From Hyaloraphidium curvatum SAG 235-1 (Eukaryota; Fungi; Monoblepharomycota): DNA of 64,000 nucleotides. A program made the translations under genes and the position numbers. The stretch spans positions 434,001 through 498,000 of the forward strand of contig JAIVFI010000023.1 in NCBI GenBank assembly GCA_025558095.1, given 5' to 3'. Below, piece by piece: positions 45,125 to 54,386 of this stretch. How positions within the stretch are numbered: the first letter of the stretch is position 1; the number at the start of each line of letters is the position of its first letter. The notes under the pieces were generated by a model. It saw nothing but the letters and a program-made list of their open reading frames with translations, was not told the DNA's origin and ran no database searches.

Positions 45125-48100
45125 CTACCAGCCGTCCCGAAGCACCACCTCGAGCTGGTCGGCGAAGAAGTCCGCGTCCTCGACCGAGATGCACATCGGC
45201 GGCTTGATCTTGAGCACGTTGCTCCGCTCTCCGGTCGGCTGGCAAATCACGCCGAGCTCCCTGAGCCTGTCGCAGATGGCCCCGCACTCTTTGGTCGCCG
45301 GCTCGAGCGTTTCCCTGTCCCTGACAAGCTCGGCGCCCAGGTACAGCCCGATGCCGTGCACCGCGCCGACTATCGGGTACCGCTCCTTCATGTCGGCCAG
45401 CCTCTCGAGGAGCCTGGACCCCACCCGCGCCGCGTTCTCTTGCAGCCCCTCGTCCCGTATGGCATCGAGCACGGTGCACCCGACTACGCACGAGACGGGG
45501 CTCCCTCCCGCGCTGGAGAAGAAGTTGCCCTGCGCCGAAAACGCGTCGGCGATCTCCTTCCGGGTGATCACCGCGCCGAGCGGGTGCCCGTTCCCGAGCG
45601 CCTTGGCGACGGTGATGATGTCCGGCACGACCGCGGGGCGGGCGAGCTCGTGCGCCCAGAACGCGGCGCCGGTGCGGGCCAGGCCGACCTGCACCTCGTC
45701 CGCGATCGCGTAGCCGCCGGCCTCGCGGACCGCGGCGTAGGCGGCATGGAGGTAGCCGTCGGGGAGCACGACGCCGCCGGCGTTGCCGAAGAGGGGCTCG
45801 CAGATGAAGGCGGCGGGGGGCTTGCCGTCCGTGGCCAGTGAGCGGATGAGACCAGTGACGTCGGCGGCGTAGCCGGCGGCTGCTTCGGCGCCGCGGTAAG
45901 TGCCGCGGTAGCTGTTGGGCGCAGCTGCGAGGTGGATCCAGTCGGGACGCGTCTCAAGGGCCCGTGGATTGTCGTATAGCGACGTGGTGACGGAGTCGGA
46001 CAAGAAGGTCCTGCAAAGCAGTCAGTGACAACTCAAGCCCTGTCCAAAATGTGCTCACCATCCGTGATATGCCTCCCGAACGGCCACAACGTCCTGCCGC
46101 CCGGTGATAGTCCGCGCCATGTGAAGTGCAAGATCGACGGCTTCCGACCCGCTGTTGACGAGGAACACCGTGTCGAGCCCCTCGGGTGCCAACTTCGCCA
46201 GGCGCTCGCAGAGCTCGGCAATAGCGGCATAGTGGAACCTGGAGTTGGTGTTGAGCAGCCTCATCTGCCTCGACACAACCTCCGCCAGCTTCGGGTGGGA
46301 GTGCCCGATCGCGGCAACGTTGTTCACCATGTCCAGGTACGTCCTCGCGTCGCAGTCCACCAGGTGCGCCCGCCAGCCGCGCTCGATCCGCATCGGATCG
46401 GCGTAGTAGTGCTCCTGCAGCCGTGCGAAAGTGGCGTCTCGGCGGGCCAGCAGGGCGCGGGCGTCTTCGGGAACGTAGGAAGCCTGAACGCCAAGAAGGA
46501 CGTCCGGGGACGGGCACAGCGATGTCCAGGCTCCACGCCACACGGGGGCGACGAACTCGGGGGGTTCGAGATCGCGAGCGAGGCAAAGGCGGATGCGCAG
46601 CACACCGGAGCTTGAAACGCGTCCCAGTGGATCGCCAACTGCAACAGAAATTCCGGCGGCAGGAGCCGATTCAGCACCACGAATGAAAACACGACCCGGG
46701 CCACCATCCAAGACGAGGTGATCGCCGTGGTGAGCCACAGTTCCCGTCCAGGGTGCACGAATCTCGGTGCCCGCCCCAGCTAACACGTCGATGCCCAGCG
46801 GCACCGTGGCAAGTGTAACGCTGCTGTTCACCACGGTCCGCGTAAGCCGCGGCTCGGCCCAGCGCGTACACGCGGCATGTGTTGGCGATTCCGCGGCGGC
46901 TTTGCGGAGGATCCGATCGTCCTCAGCGGCCCCGTGCAGATGGTTGCCCGAATGAAGCTTTTCCGACGTCGAAGACAGGTCCACCACAGCAAACGTGCCG
47001 TGCAGCGACGGCAAAAGCGGGGCGGCCGAGGCCAGCAGCGCCAACTGTTCTGCCACCTTGGGCGAAGGGCCCTTTCCGAGAGCGCGCCGCAAGGCCTCCT
47101 CCCCGGCAACAAAAGGAACAGAGCAGGCCATTTTCCAAATCCTCGTCTCGGATTCCAGCGCTCCCGTCGCAGATTCGTTGTCGGGATCCAGCTTGGTTTG
47201 GTGCTCACCGCACGCCACGAGGACCGCACCGCGGAGCACCACCAATGGCCAGAAGGCCGAGATCTCGGCGTCAGTCAGTGGCACGAGCTGGTTGAAGGAA
47301 ACTATCGCCGGAATGACCGCCATGGGATCGCCATCGCCGTGCCTGAGTACGCAAGAAGCTGTTACGGCAAGCTCCCCGACGCGCCAGCTGCGGCCAAGGT
47401 CCCCGAAATCAATAATCCCGTTCGGTCGGAGCCGGCCCGCAGCATCGGGAGAGGCGACGACATTGTCGTCCGTGATGTCGCCGTGGATGGTCTGGATCGC
47501 AAGGTGCGGAATCAAAGGCTCCAGAGCTCCCAGCACACGGTCCACGCTTGCCGCAACGGCCGCCCGCTTGGCGGGGTCCGCGATGGAGCCCAACAAGGCG
47601 CGCGTGACGGCCGCCGCGTTCCGCAGGTCCCACTGTCCCATCGGCTGGTCGAGGCCGGGGTGGTCAAAGTCGGCCAGCGCCGAGACGGAGCGGCCGGCAA
47701 GCCTCCCGAGGTCCTCGACGACGCAAGGTGCCAGGTAGCTCTTCTGCGGCAGAGGAACGCCTTCCAGGTAGGTGACCACGCGGACAAGTAGCGTCTCCTC
47801 GCCGATGCGGGCTTCGCGGATGAAACTCCCGTCGAGCGACTGAACGGGCTGAGGAACGGCAAAGGGCTCTGCGCTCCCTGCGACGTGCGCCGCGATGTGG
47901 AGCAAAGCGGAATCCTGAGCTTCCAGCGACAACCGCGGCCAGGACCGGTTCGCTATCTTGAGCACGAGGCGGCCGCCGGGCTTTCCGACGCGGAAATTTC
48001 TGTCCTGGTTGGATCCGAGCTCTCTGATTTGCAGATCGCCGGACAGGCCCCAGAGGGACGAAGCAAGCGCCGCGGCGCCCGCATCGTCGATGACGGGCCG

Positions 48101-48133
48101 CGGAAAAAGCTCAATCCCGGCCGCATCGCTCAT
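45125..48133 (-). CDS. Fusion: APH/hydroxylysine-kinase-like phosphotransferase + M23-like linker + class III aminotransferase/phospho-lyase; intron 46011-46058
   Basis: ELGSNQDRNF, IHGDITDDNV, IIDFGD; LGIDV..GTEIRAPWTGTV; YLDMVNNV, NSGSEAVDLA, AYHGW, IADEVQVG, VAKALGNG. Confidence 0.92.
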
Positions 48134-48293
48134 TTTCGCGCGTTTCTGGCGCAACAGGCGCTCGGAAGCGCGTTTTCTTAGTGGAGCAAGGGCGACGAAA
48201 ATGGTGTGTGATCGACGAGATCGACCCGCCCGTGGCGACTTCTACAGCATTGTGTTTGCCAAACGCCAAGATCGCTGACCGGGAGGGAGTCTA

Positions 48294-50623: not shown

Positions 50624-52265
50624 TCAGCAATTGATCTCCGGGTAGCAGCTTGGCGGGCGGTAGCCGACAAACAGTCCGATGTTGACGGCGACGTAGATCA
50701 CTGCAAGGTTTTGTTATTCTCCTTCCCATCAGCTTCTCGCGCAACCCACCGAGAGCAACAACAAAGGTGATCAGCGAAAGCGACACCAGAAAGTCGCGGT
50801 ACGAATCTCCCTTCGCAATCGAGCAAGGCCCGTATCCCCAGCACACCCTTGCAGGCTTCGAAGGAACCTCGTCCGGATCGGAGACGTCGCCATTGATTGC
50901 GACAGCGGTCGTCTTTCGCTGCGACGCCGTGCTGACATGGGGTGACACGGACGAAGCCTCCTCGGCGAAAGCAGCAGCCTTTCCTTCGATTTCGGAGGAC
51001 GACTTCTCCGCGGCGAGTTTTTCCTGCTTGGCCTCGTACTGTATGAGGAGCCATCGTTCCACGATGCTCTCGATGAAGATGAGGCCCACCAAGACCATGG
51101 TAGTGATATTAATGTAGTCCCCGACTGAAAGTGATGTAGGAACTGTTGTGATGGGATGGATGGTAAGCAGCAGGCCCCGTGCAAGAAGAGATGGATGGGA
51201 ACCCACAGCCTAGGAAGGCGTTCAAGGAATTGATGTTGAGCACAACGACGAAGATGCTATGAAGGTGGTTAGCTTCCGCCCGGCGATCAAGAGCTTGTTG
51301 CGTCTCACCTGGCGCCGAGGATGCCCATCCTCGCATCAAAGTGGTCCGTGACGGGGAGAACAAGGGCGCCCAAGCTCATGGCGAAGCTCAAATAAGAGGG
51401 CAACATTATCTGCACAAAATTCGTCGTATCGTCTCGTGCCAATTCGAAAACGATGGTAACGCGGTCAAACTGAGGCACCTGGGAAAGGTACGTTGTGCCA
51501 ATCAGAAAACGATGGTAACGCGGTCAAACTGACGCACCTGAGAAAGGTACGTTTCGCTGTACTCCACGACGCTTCGCAAGACGGTCGGCGGACCGCTGCG
51601 GAGCGCGAGGGCCGGGTCCATCGCAACGTCCGGGGCAACCACGCTGTTCTTGTCGTCGTAGACCAGCTTGAGTGCAGTTGTGTCCGGGAGCGCCTCGATG
51701 ATCAATCGCAGATAGGTCTCGTCGAAGGGATAGTATCTCAGATCCTCGTCGACCCTGATGTGGGGGACATTCGTCGTGGAGAGGTTGGAGTTGGGACGCT
51801 CCCTCTATAGATGCCGCGAGCCTACCTGGCTGTCGCCTGAACCTTCATCGTGCTCCAGTGAACAAAGGCGGGGCCGAGCTGGGCGGCGGGAGGAATCGTA
51901 CGGTACTCCTGGCCCGACACCGACAGGCCTCCCGGCTTCAAGTTGAGGATCTCGACAGTGTCCCAAAGGGTCACGTTTGCGTCGCAGACCATGGTGATCC
52001 ACCCTTCCCAGACCGCGCTGTCGTCCGCGAAGGAGAAGCCGAGCAGAGACATCGTGTACGTCTCGAAATGGCACTCCGTGGCAGTCTCGTTCGTCTGTCT
52101 GGCGGCAATGTCCCGCTGGACAGGTCGACCGGTCTTGCCGGCGTCGCGGCCCACGGCCCCTCGCCGGTAGGCGGCGGCCTCGACCCGCCCCGCCGCCAAA
52201 AAGACGAGGAGGACGAGCAGGGAGGCGCGGAGGAGGAAATCGGGCAGACTTCGGCGGTGTCCCAT
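50624..52265 (-). CDS. Pentameric ligand-gated ion channel subunit, Cys-less (GLIC/ELIC-type), 5 introns
   Basis: Signal peptide; Pro-loop DLRYYPFDETYLRL; pre-M1 Arg (FELAR); M1 FVQIMLPSY; M2 FDARMGILGASIFVVVL; M2-M3 FPTSLSVGDY; M3; long loop; M4. Confidence 0.85.
51436..51553. repeat. Direct tandem duplication, 2 x 59 bp, 4 mismatches
   Basis: 51436-51494 gtgccaattcgaaaacgatggtaacgcggtcaaactgaggcacctgggaaaggtacgtt vs 51495-51553 gtgccaatcagaaaacgatggtaacgcggtcaaactgacgcacctgagaaaggtacgtt. Confidence 0.97.
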
Positions 52266-52355: not shown

Positions 52356-54386
52356 CTATTCGCTGAAGCAGCACAGGATTGCATCCCACATCAACTCCGA
52401 AGCCGCAATCCCCAGCGCTGCGGTGTTCAGGCGCGGATCATCGATCTCGTTCGTCGAAACCATGTACAGCTGGTCGCCATCCTGCGGGCAGTGGAGCGGC
52501 TGTATGCCGCGGGCCATTGAGCTGTGAACCTGGCGCGCCAGCTGCGTCAGGAGCACATCGGGAAGCCTGACGTTGGTAACGACCAGCGAGATCGTCGTGT
52601 TGCCCATGATTCCTTGAGCTGGAGTCGCAAGTTCTTGAAGAAGCTCCTCCGCGGAGGCGATCATGTCCTTCCTGTTGCTGCCCGGCTCAGCCACCCACAC
52701 CGTGTGCTGCGACGGATCAAGAGAGCCGCGGACGATCTTGTTGGAGCGGTCGTAGACGGCACCCAGGGCGTTGATGACCGTGAAGCACGCCAAACGGATG
52801 CCGCCGGCCAGCAATCGGTAAGCCCCGCCTTGGCCAGCACGCTCGCCCCGTCCGAAAAGCTTGCCGGCCGTAGCGGAACGACCCGCACCGTAGCTGCCAA
52901 GGGGAAAAATCCCAGGCTTCGCGGCACGAAATGCGGCGCGACCCAATTCCTTGTCTGGATGAATCGCATTCTCTCGACCCCGGAAATCGTAGATGATGGC
53001 ACCCCGAACGACGGGCAGGTTGTTCCACGTGTAGTTGTAGCGCCTTTTCTTGAACAGCTCGGCCAAGACTCCCGTTGAGGCTTCCAGGCCATAGTACGAG
53101 CCCCCTGCGAAACAGATGGCATCCACAGGGCCGTCTCCAGGCTGGAAAAGCCCCGGGGCACCGCCGCGGACGTCGTGCGCGCACGTTGCTGTGGTTCCAA
53201 AATGGAACACCGTGCACCCCGTCGGTCCTGCGGCGTACTCGGCGACGCCGATCGAGAAGGCGGGCCAGTCAAACTCGAGCTTCCTTGTGGGCTCCGGAAT
53301 CGAAGGATCCAAAGAAACGAGGTCGTTTGTGAGCGCGATCGGCTCCCCACGAGGATAAGGCAGTGGCGCTCCGGAATCTCTCCATCGAACGAGGTGATCG
53401 CGAAGCTCCGACACCTTGTGCTCTCCTCCGAACTCGTCCACGCGCCGGGCGTAAAGTTCCTCGCACAAGCGCTTCTCCAGCGTAGCTTGCACTTCGTTGG
53501 CACGGGGTCGGTTCCGCATGAACCGGTTCTCCATCTCTTCATCCGAATTGATGCCTGACATTCCGCCGAGGATGAAGCCCACCATTTTGCCGGCCAGCCA
53601 CACCGCATCCGGCAGAAAGTTCATGCGATTATCGCAGTCCAGGTAGGTACGCGACTGAAGGTACTCCTTTCCAGCTTCGCGCGAATAGAAGCCCCACCAC
53701 GAGTCCCAAAGAGCCCAACACTCCATCAGACCGCTGCCGTACTCGATGTGCCCTTCGTTGGTGAACACGCGGTCCGATAAAATGGCCTGTACCGGCGTTT
53801 GAAAGGAGGAGGACACGAGAATCACGCCCGGCGGTGGCGACACCACCGTGTCCCCGTGGTGGTTGTGCACGTGGTAAGCCTCCTTCGTAGTCCGCAGTGC
53901 CTCTCGCCCCTCGGGCGTTAGCGCAGCCCTGACCGCGGCGTTTTCCCAGCCCGTGAACGACTTCATCACGTTCCTCCCGCCCGGGTTCAAGGCCCACGCG
54001 ATGACTTGGTGGCCGAAAGACAGACCAATCCACCTCGTTCGGGAGACATTGTCCGCGATGTACTGCTCCAGCTTCGCGACATACGGCACGTGGTGATCGT
54101 AGGCCCCTTCATCTGCCCCCGTCACGAAGATGCAGTCGTACGCGCTCAACGCGTCGCCCTGGGGCCAGCTCTCCGGAACGTGAAAGATGTACTCGTCGAA
54201 AGAGAATCCGGCGACCTCGTCCGCAAAGTAACGTGCCGCCGCGAGCTCAAAGATGGCCTGGAGCCGGTATCGCGTCCCTCCAGCGCAGTCGGGGGCGTAG
54301 GCTTCGTGTTCAATCATGAAGTCCGGAGGATCCGGCAGCATGACCGCAACACGGATCGTGCGCGGCTGCGGCGGGGCGGAGGTCAT
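52356..54386 (-). CDS. Intronless fusion: class I glutamine-amidotransferase-like domain + NylC/DmpA (peptidase P1/S58) Ntn hydrolase
   Basis: N-term IFVTG, IGLSFGHQ, HGDTV, EGHIEY; C-term GPTGCTV, DVRGG, AICFAGGS, AIIYDF, PDKELGRAA, GNTTIS, QVHSSMARGIQP, DGD. Confidence 0.9.
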   Translation of the reverse strand: MTSAPPQPRTIRVAVMLPDPPDFMIEHEAYAPDCAGGTRYRLQAIFELAAARYFADEVAGFSFDEYIFHVPESWPQGDALSAYDCIFVTGADEGAYDHHVPYVAKLEQYIADNVSRTRWIGLSFGHQVIAWALNPGGRNVMKSFTGWENAAVRAALTPEGREALRTTKEAYHVHNHHGDTVVSPPPGVILVSSSFQTPVQAILSDRVFTNEGHIEYGSGLMECWALWDSWWGFYSREAGKEYLQSRTYLDCDNRMNFLPDAVWLAGKMVGFILGGMSGINSDEEMENRFMRNRPRANEVQATLEKRLCEELYARRVDEFGGEHKVSELRDHLVRWRDSGAPLPYPRGEPIALTNDLVSLDPSIPEPTRKLEFDWPAFSIGVAEYAAGPTGCTVFHFGTTATCAHDVRGGAPGLFQPGDGPVDAICFAGGSYYGLEASTGVLAELFKKRRYNYTWNNLPVVRGAIIYDFRGRENAIHPDKELGRAAFRAAKPGIFPLGSYGAGRSATAGKLFGRGERAGQGGAYRLLAGGIRLACFTVINALGAVYDRSNKIVRGSLDPSQHTVWVAEPGSNRKDMIASAEELLQELATPAQGIMGNTTISLVVTNVRLPDVLLTQLARQVHSSMARGIQPLHCPQDGDQLYMVSTNEIDDPRLNTAALGIAASELMWDAILCCFSE

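Follow-up and report, generated by a model that had tools for sequence, protein, structure and literature searches.

A predicted Cys-less pentameric ligand-gated channel in the fungus Hyaloraphidium curvatum and a likely recent intron gain in its gene

Ion channels of the pentameric ligand-gated family (pLGICs) have been found in every major group but land plants and fungi (PMC4795631), and in the survey of Jaiteh, Taly and Henin (2016) none were detected in Fungi (PMC4795631). A gene interrupted by five short introns in Hyaloraphidium curvatum (Monoblepharomycota), a non-flagellated and poorly studied organism (PMC6899921), raises the question of whether this kingdom does contain such a channel, and of how the channel came to be there. 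The window analysed here is a stretch of 64,000 nt from this fungus, in which the original prediction had proposed a complete channel gene of a family most familiar from the neurotransmitter receptors of animals and generally reported as absent from fungi. The 2016 survey says as much, and our literature search, which covered few subscription journals, returned no later report of a fungal pLGIC. The sections below treat the gene itself, its family, its residence and origin in the fungus, and its place among known systems.

Exon chain and gene models

The gene lies on the minus strand of the window (52265-50624), where six exons joined across five GT-AG introns give an open frame of 448 codons. 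The exons sum to 1347 nt, equal to 448 amino acids and a stop, with compatible phases and no internal stops. The features of the locus are as follows, residue positions having been placed by alignment.

52356..54386, minus strand: upstream gene with a peptidase S58 domain, separate from the channel gene
51826..52265, minus strand: exon 1, with the ATG, signal peptide (about aa 1-30), basic linker and beta1-beta6
52073 and 51986, minus strand: Cys codons of exon 1 conserved in the clade
51755..51825, minus strand: intron 1, 71 nt, phase 2; identical junction in the NCBI model
51538..51754, minus strand: exon 2, with the Pro-loop YPFD (51732-51721) and beta7-beta9; Val at P-8, Leu at P+6
51479..51537, minus strand: intron 2, 59 nt, phase 0; one unit of the tandem duplication
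51436..51553, strand not applicable: 59-nt tandem duplication, two copies with four differences
51309..51478, minus strand: exon 3, with beta10, pre-M1 Arg (51436), M1 Pro (51400), the M1-M2 linker (Asp -2', Ala -1', Arg 0' at 51331) and the start of M2
51257..51308, minus strand: intron 3, 52 nt, phase 2; GCTAAC branch motif
51207..51256, minus strand: exon 4, with M2 from 8' to 23' (Phe 9', Leu 13', Asn 16', Gly 23')
51143..51206, minus strand: intron 4, 64 nt, phase 1
50750..51142, minus strand: exon 5, with the M2-M3 loop, M3 (Asp 26', Glu 10'), the cytoplasmic loop and the first half of M4
50701..50749, minus strand: intron 5, 49 nt, phase 1; identical junction in the NCBI model
50624..50700, minus strand: exon 6, with the end of M4, an extracellular tail, a conserved Cys pair (50647/50629) and the stop

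Exon 1 also encodes two N-glycosylation sequons, and the hydropathy maximum of its leader falls at aa 10-28, signal-like leaders being present in the relatives as well. The cytoplasmic loop of exon 5 is about 82 aa long and contains 12 D/E and 10 K/R residues.

The main evidence for this exon chain comes from an orthologue (P0002) encoded on L001, a 24-kb eukaryotic contig with Sas10 and zf-MYND neighbours. P0002 is about 50% identical to the window protein and its mature protein is encoded without an intron; in tblastn it aligned with all six exons, in order, at 48, 48, 67, 54, 63 and 60% identity. As an orthologue without introns in this region matches the six exons in order, the chain cannot be ascribed to chance. 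The exon-intron arrangement of the original prediction therefore stands, with fitting phases, no internal stop and a collinear orthologue, and every motif that it quoted is present in the order given, by exon reading and residue alignment. Exons were searched singly, and full-length tests used P0002 from L001, the proteins P0008 and P0009, or a part of the NCBI model (P0001) that is without beta10 and six residues of the M2-M3 loop. A 23-nt alternative for intron 1 (acceptor 51803) was rejected, as it adds about 16 residues that are not in the relatives.

When exon 2 was searched against 1.84 billion representatives, four proteins came back, the identical one being KAI9016126.1 of H. curvatum, a 1114-aa 'hypothetical protein' in which the upstream peptidase S58 gene is fused to the channel gene. 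This model independently shares the junctions of introns 1, 3 and 5 but drops 23 residues (beta10, the pre-M1 Arg and part of the M2-M3 loop) that are included in P0002. Its acceptors after exons 2 and 4 were rejected because they remove residues that all relatives have, including the pre-M1 Arg. Only 90 nt separate the peptidase stop from the channel ATG. The fusion was likewise rejected, since the relatives begin with their own signal peptides and L001 and the window have no neighbour in common; it is disfavoured in particular by P0002, which carries its own signal-like leader behind one 5' intron. The fused and incomplete NCBI model, together with blank Pfam results, explains why the gene was previously unnoticed. 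By eye, the N-terminal half of the upstream gene (52356-54386) resembles a class I glutamine amidotransferase, with no Pfam match; an exact look-up of this ORF returned nothing.

Family assignment and predicted working

Domain models were the first check proposed for the original prediction, and here they gave nothing: Pfam Neur_chan_LBD and Neur_chan_memb matched no exon and no fungal relative. Taken alone this outcome is a false negative, and Neur_chan is also blank for the bacterial relatives L007, L010 and L011. Matches of single exons to Pfam and of exon 2 to the PDB (VP40, RsbW, MscS_TM) were rejected as chance. A scan of prokaryotic genomes returned four relatives at 20-23% identity, one of which, the bridge sequence L006, passes the Pfam Neur_chan_LBD cut-off and matches ELIC and GLIC. 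When fungal and bacterial pLGIC profiles were compared with hhalign, they aligned at 98.6% (E 1e-15, 243 columns), and exon 2 alone reached 91.9% against the bacterial profile. Against the PDB, the fungal-only profile gave a weak match, in register, to glycine receptor beta (E 0.2); the fungal plus Streptomyces profile matched GABA-A rho1 (E 1.5e-6) and other pLGICs, and broader profiles matched GABA-A, glycine, ELIC and GLIC sequences.

Structure prediction points in the same direction. A model of the orthologue made from fungal rows only had a pLDDT of 51, yet retrieved pLGICs alone. With 28 rows the pLDDT rose to 84, for a beta-rich ectodomain and four helices; this model is of the orthologue, not of the window protein, and is not fully independent, as its alignment held bacterial pLGIC rows. 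In a Foldseek search with it, the PDB matches listed, down to rank 50, were all pLGICs (best E 2.6e-15), with TM scores (by target) of 0.65-0.70 to ELIC/GLIC. The succession of a beta-sandwich ectodomain and four membrane helices was thus found on the orthologue, to which the six exons align.

The residue register is consistent with this fold. YPFD occupies the tip between beta6 and beta7, where F/YPxD is expected, and its Pro is present in every aligned row; the spacing from pre-M1 Arg to M1 Pro is 12, the same as for R192/P204 of GLIC. The M2 pattern includes Arg 0' and Phe 9', the latter a 13% variant in Table 1 of the 2016 survey, where 23' is conserved as Pro in 88% and is Gly in 3% (PMC4795631). 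Position 23' is the minor variant Gly in the window protein, and a Pro is conserved in the clade at 25'. The beta9 aromatic column has no Trp, being Leu or Arg depending on the alignment, and Phe or Tyr in the paralogue; in the family as a whole, both the 23' Pro and the beta9 aromatic are usual but not invariant. The disulfide-forming Cys residues at P-8 and P+6 that mark the animal Cys-loop receptors are missing (Val and Leu); the protein is a Pro-loop receptor, not a Cys-loop receptor.

The pLGIC architecture originally proposed is upheld by the agreement of profile-profile comparison, PDB profile search, predicted fold and residue register. Its individual elements fared similarly: the signal peptide and beta-rich ectodomain agree with the hydropathy maximum and the orthologue model, the Pro-loop has no flanking Cys, and the pre-M1 Arg and M1 Pro are in place. 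Two descriptions need amendment. The quoted M2-M3 loop motif is present, but the canonical 23' Pro is replaced by Gly and the quoted Pro is that at 25'; and 'Cys-less' holds for the Pro-loop but not for the whole protein, whose six Cys include four that are conserved in the clade. On this evidence the gene very probably encodes an intact subunit of a Cys-less pentameric ligand-gated channel belonging to a divergent clade. This clade is small and so far seen solely in Hyaloraphidium and close relatives. Across its five sequences (35-55% identity) frames are open and M2 is conserved, and is indeed the best conserved segment, which argues for functional constraint.

By analogy with GLIC, ELIC and the Cys-loop receptors, a working scheme may be proposed. 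The signal peptide would direct the ectodomain into the secretory pathway, where modification of the two sequons and of both conserved Cys pairs (beta1-beta2, and after M4) would be possible, and five subunits, alone or with the paralogue, would come together in the plasma membrane. A small solute from outside the cell, or protons, would act on the ectodomain; a bridge between the Pro-loop Asp and the pre-M1 Arg, together with the M2-M3 loop, would carry the movement to M2, which would open a hydrophobic gate at Phe 9' and Leu 13'. Through the channel the cell would rapidly sense chemicals or pH in the water around it. Swimming is an unlikely role in a fungus that has no flagellum; a plain guess is that the channel responds to water chemistry or to neighbouring cells.

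In such pores the narrowest point is at -2' (PMC5715906), and in GLIC the Glu at this position is the key filter residue (PMC5760087). At -2' each of the five fungal proteins carries Asp or Glu, aligned with the GLIC Glu and followed by Ala as in GLIC, and for this reason cation selectivity is the better guess and would seem the likelier outcome, anion selectivity being distinctly less probable. A protein with the pLGIC fold could also be non-conducting, serving as a sensor or scaffold, and a reading as an anion-selective or non-conducting protein draws on several residues: Ala -1' and Arg 0' resemble those of anion channels, Asp 26' and Glu 10' of M3 are anion-type features, Phe 9' is bulky, and both the 23' Pro and the beta9 Trp are lost. 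Yet position -2' is without Pro and acidic throughout the clade, Phe 9' and Gly 23' are known substitutions within the family, the M3 Glu is also found in GLIC, and the strongest conservation is that of M2 itself. This reading is the less likely one, with a modest share of the probability.

Residence, origin and intron gain

As the family is unexpected in fungi, the contig or the gene might be suspected to be a bacterial or protist contaminant. This is extremely improbable. A 15.8-kb part of the window surrounding the gene has an exact match in a 699-kb contig of H. curvatum, the neighbours in the window are eukaryotic (including a C2H2 transcription factor), and the GC3 of the channel gene (0.76) is like that of its neighbours. 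A second H. curvatum copy, KAI9032210.1, is uninterrupted and lies on a separate 1.15-Mb contig (L005:5800-7332), flanked by ankyrin and TPR genes. This order is kept on L004, which comes from the same sequencing run as L001, and synteny is partly kept (TPR, LCM methyltransferase, Fcf2) on L002 and L016, which come from other metagenomes, so that the paralogue is syntenic across independent samples. Proteins flanking the channel genes on the relatives' contigs mostly match H. curvatum, at about 40-77%, and the five fungal sequences form one clade (support 100/100). We infer from these comparisons that the metagenomic contigs belong to organisms related to Hyaloraphidium and that the gene was duplicated before these lineages separated. 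The syntenic paralogue and the presence of the family in the metagenomic relatives argue against contamination, and the spliceosomal introns, the GC3 value and paralogue synteny in three genomes indicate that the gene is resident in the fungus, in keeping with the fungal host originally stated. The NCBI start of KAI9032210.1 leaves out an in-frame upstream signal-like leader with a short repeated peptide. A word-based protein search missed a known relative (P0004), and absence from other fungi is not readable from it; further metagenome scans, viral scans and phage tblastn returned no relatives.

Regarding the origin of the clade, the original prediction left a choice between a retained ancestral and a horizontally acquired channel. 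Bacterial horizontal acquisition is favoured here over vertical retention on sequence grounds: the family was probably acquired by an old bacterial transfer into the Hyaloraphidium lineage, with subsequent duplication, growth of the cytoplasmic loop and later intron gain in the window copy. A tblastn search of 72,556 plasmids with the orthologue returned two Streptomyces genes only (E 3e-9 and 1e-6). Among the bacterial rows compared, this pair alone shares the beta1/beta2 Cys, Gly 23' and Leu 13' with the fungal clade; the two rank first and third against the fungal-only profile and join the fungal clade with support 97/92, in an unrooted tree of fungal and bacterial rows that has no eukaryotic, GLIC or ELIC rows and a fungal branch of about 3 substitutions/site. 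AU tests did not reject other bacterial sisters (p 0.20 and 0.32). A bacterial transfer is suggested because the nearest outside relatives found are these Streptomyces proteins with shared derived residues. Alphaproteobacterial and chlamydial matches from one search were discounted as circular, since their relatives were in the query.

The alternative of vertical inheritance from an opisthokont ancestor, through the eukaryotic Cys-less clade and with loss in nearly all other fungi, is less likely, with a modest share of the probability. A long M3-M4 loop is a eukaryote-like feature of pLGICs, and its presence here counts in favour of this alternative, as do the retention of other animal-like traits by early-diverging fungi and the ranking of animal anion channels above ELIC by the fungal plus Streptomyces profile (31 vs 23 bits). 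In addition, Capsaspora and Monosiga have pLGICs, and unicellular lineages often lose them (PMC4795631). Against it, many independent losses would be required, the sequence searches retrieved no protist or animal protein, and the coding core is intron-free in most relatives. The derived residues common to the clade and Streptomyces also speak against it, as does the fungal-only profile, which scored the Streptomyces proteins at 58-73 bits (filters off) and the best animal receptor at 14, under different settings.

Several observations on bacterial and viral sequences were made alongside. A bacterial pLGIC subfamily (P0013/P0015 clusters, L007, L008, L009) is present in Candidatus Nucleicultrix amoebiphila, where two copies lie near each other, in a Chlamydiales MAG and in alphaproteobacterial MAGs, and several of these organisms look like protist symbionts. 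On a plasmid of Azospirillum sp. B510 (L012, L013) there are two pLGIC genes; the first lies directly upstream of alanine racemase and the second upstream of cheW, a context that hints at ligands or a chemotaxis link. In a viral fold library, the pLGIC fold was found in A0A5J6VL22 (Megaviridae sample) and in A0A7S9SUV3 (virus NIOZ-UU159, 822 aa, uncharacterised); at 9-12% identity these are not close kin. The window itself contains at about 45125-48154 (minus strand) a gene for a 986-aa fused phosphotransferase (APH) and class III aminotransferase, whose architecture looks bacterial and which is possibly another transferred gene.

The introns of the window copy appear to have a history of their own. 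None of the five is found in the mature coding region of L001, L002, L004 or L005, and the window copy may have gained all of them, possibly in a burst in one gene. Intron 2 is likely a recent gain by tandem duplication of its own exon: it matches the adjacent exon copy at 55 of 59 positions (0 of 2000 shuffles), CAG/GT stands at both of its junctions and a CAG/GT proto-splice site lies inside the duplication, and L001, L002, L004 and L005 are uninterrupted in this region. The intron copy gained a +5 G, present in the other four donors, and a two-base change that gives a CTGAT branch-like motif and also creates a stop. The sequence of intron 4 is weakly similar to that with which exon 5 begins (16 of 500 shuffles, not significant after five tests), and intron 4 is possibly an older duplication-born intron. 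A duplication origin of introns 1, 3 and 5 was rejected for want of any signal.

The same duplication could be read as a frameshift or an assembly artefact, the window copy being damaged and only the paralogue functional. An unspliced duplication yields an immediate stop, both repeat copies are skipped in the NCBI model, and the exon is four residues shorter than that of the orthologue. This reading is improbable: three of the four differences between the copies fit splicing (the +5 G and the two-base change to CTGAT), a simple artefact would give identical copies, and all six exons are open and conserved.

Significance and comparison with known systems

The fungal proteins represent a new and divergent subfamily within an established superfamily of channels, so far seen in one small lineage of a kingdom believed to have no such channels. 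A wider reading may be offered tentatively, at slightly less than even chances: that these are the first pLGICs of the fungal kingdom, forming a bacterial-derived, working subfamily independent of the animal and protist receptors, with a convergent long loop and disulfides of its own, and with two subunits that may combine into a heteropentamer in an organism that does not move. A two-gene pLGIC family in a fungus removes one of the exceptions named in the standard inventory. The biological role is unknown for every pLGIC of single-celled organisms (PMC4795631), and the sequenced H. curvatum isolate is a eukaryotic cell in which such a role can be tested. The clade also provides a natural experiment on two points: the contribution of a long M3-M4 loop to a channel of prokaryote type, and the tolerance of gating for Gly where the M2-M3 proline usually stands. 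As the fungal proteins and those of Streptomyces alike go unrecognised by Pfam and NCBI, the spread of pLGICs is probably undercounted.

Compared with ELIC of Dickeya/Erwinia and GLIC of Gloeobacter, the fungal channel shares the fold, the Cys-less Pro-loop, the pre-M1 Arg and the M1 Pro, the lack of an N-terminal helix (in the orthologue model) and, with GLIC, the aromatic-acidic-Ala stretch preceding M2. Identity is only about 15%, and the fungal side differs by an 82-aa cytoplasmic loop in place of their short linker, Phe 9', Gly 23', extra conserved Cys pairs, sequons and a spliced gene. The nearest non-fungal sequences found, at 24-26% identity, are the Streptomyces proteins WP_329460756.1 and WP_263280302.1 (plasmid). 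They share with the clade the beta1/beta2 Cys, M1 Pro, Ala -1', Gly 2', Phe 9', Leu 13' and Gly 23', but have no acidic -2', no M3 Glu 10', a short M3-M4 linker and no C-terminal Cys tail. The pLGIC-like genes on Streptomyces linear plasmids (L010:3809-4849, L011:3680-4816) are annotated as hypothetical, with Pfam blank, and the main text of the 2016 survey does not mention Streptomyces or Actinobacteria (PMC4795631).

The Cys-less pLGICs of protists and invertebrates (PMC4795631) have in common with the fungal proteins a eukaryotic host, a Cys-less Pro-loop and an unknown role in single cells; none were retrieved by searches with the fungal clade, and the survey itself found none in Fungi. 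The animal GABA-A rho1 and glycine receptors, which are the best PDB sequence matches of the fungal profiles, share the fold, Ala-Arg at -1'/0', Asp 26' and Glu 10' of M3 and a long M3-M4 loop, whereas the fungal proteins are without the Cys-loop disulfide and without Pro -2', at 12-15% identity.

For intron 2, the appropriate comparison is with the Rogers model; documented cases of introns gained in this manner are few (PMC4974935). As in that model, an AGGT-containing exon segment was duplicated and gives both splice sites, with the protein unchanged. It differs from the previous cases in that the copies are 93% identical and the splice-improving changes can be read directly, splicing itself being predicted, and intron 2 would be a clean, recent example of a rarely documented mechanism.
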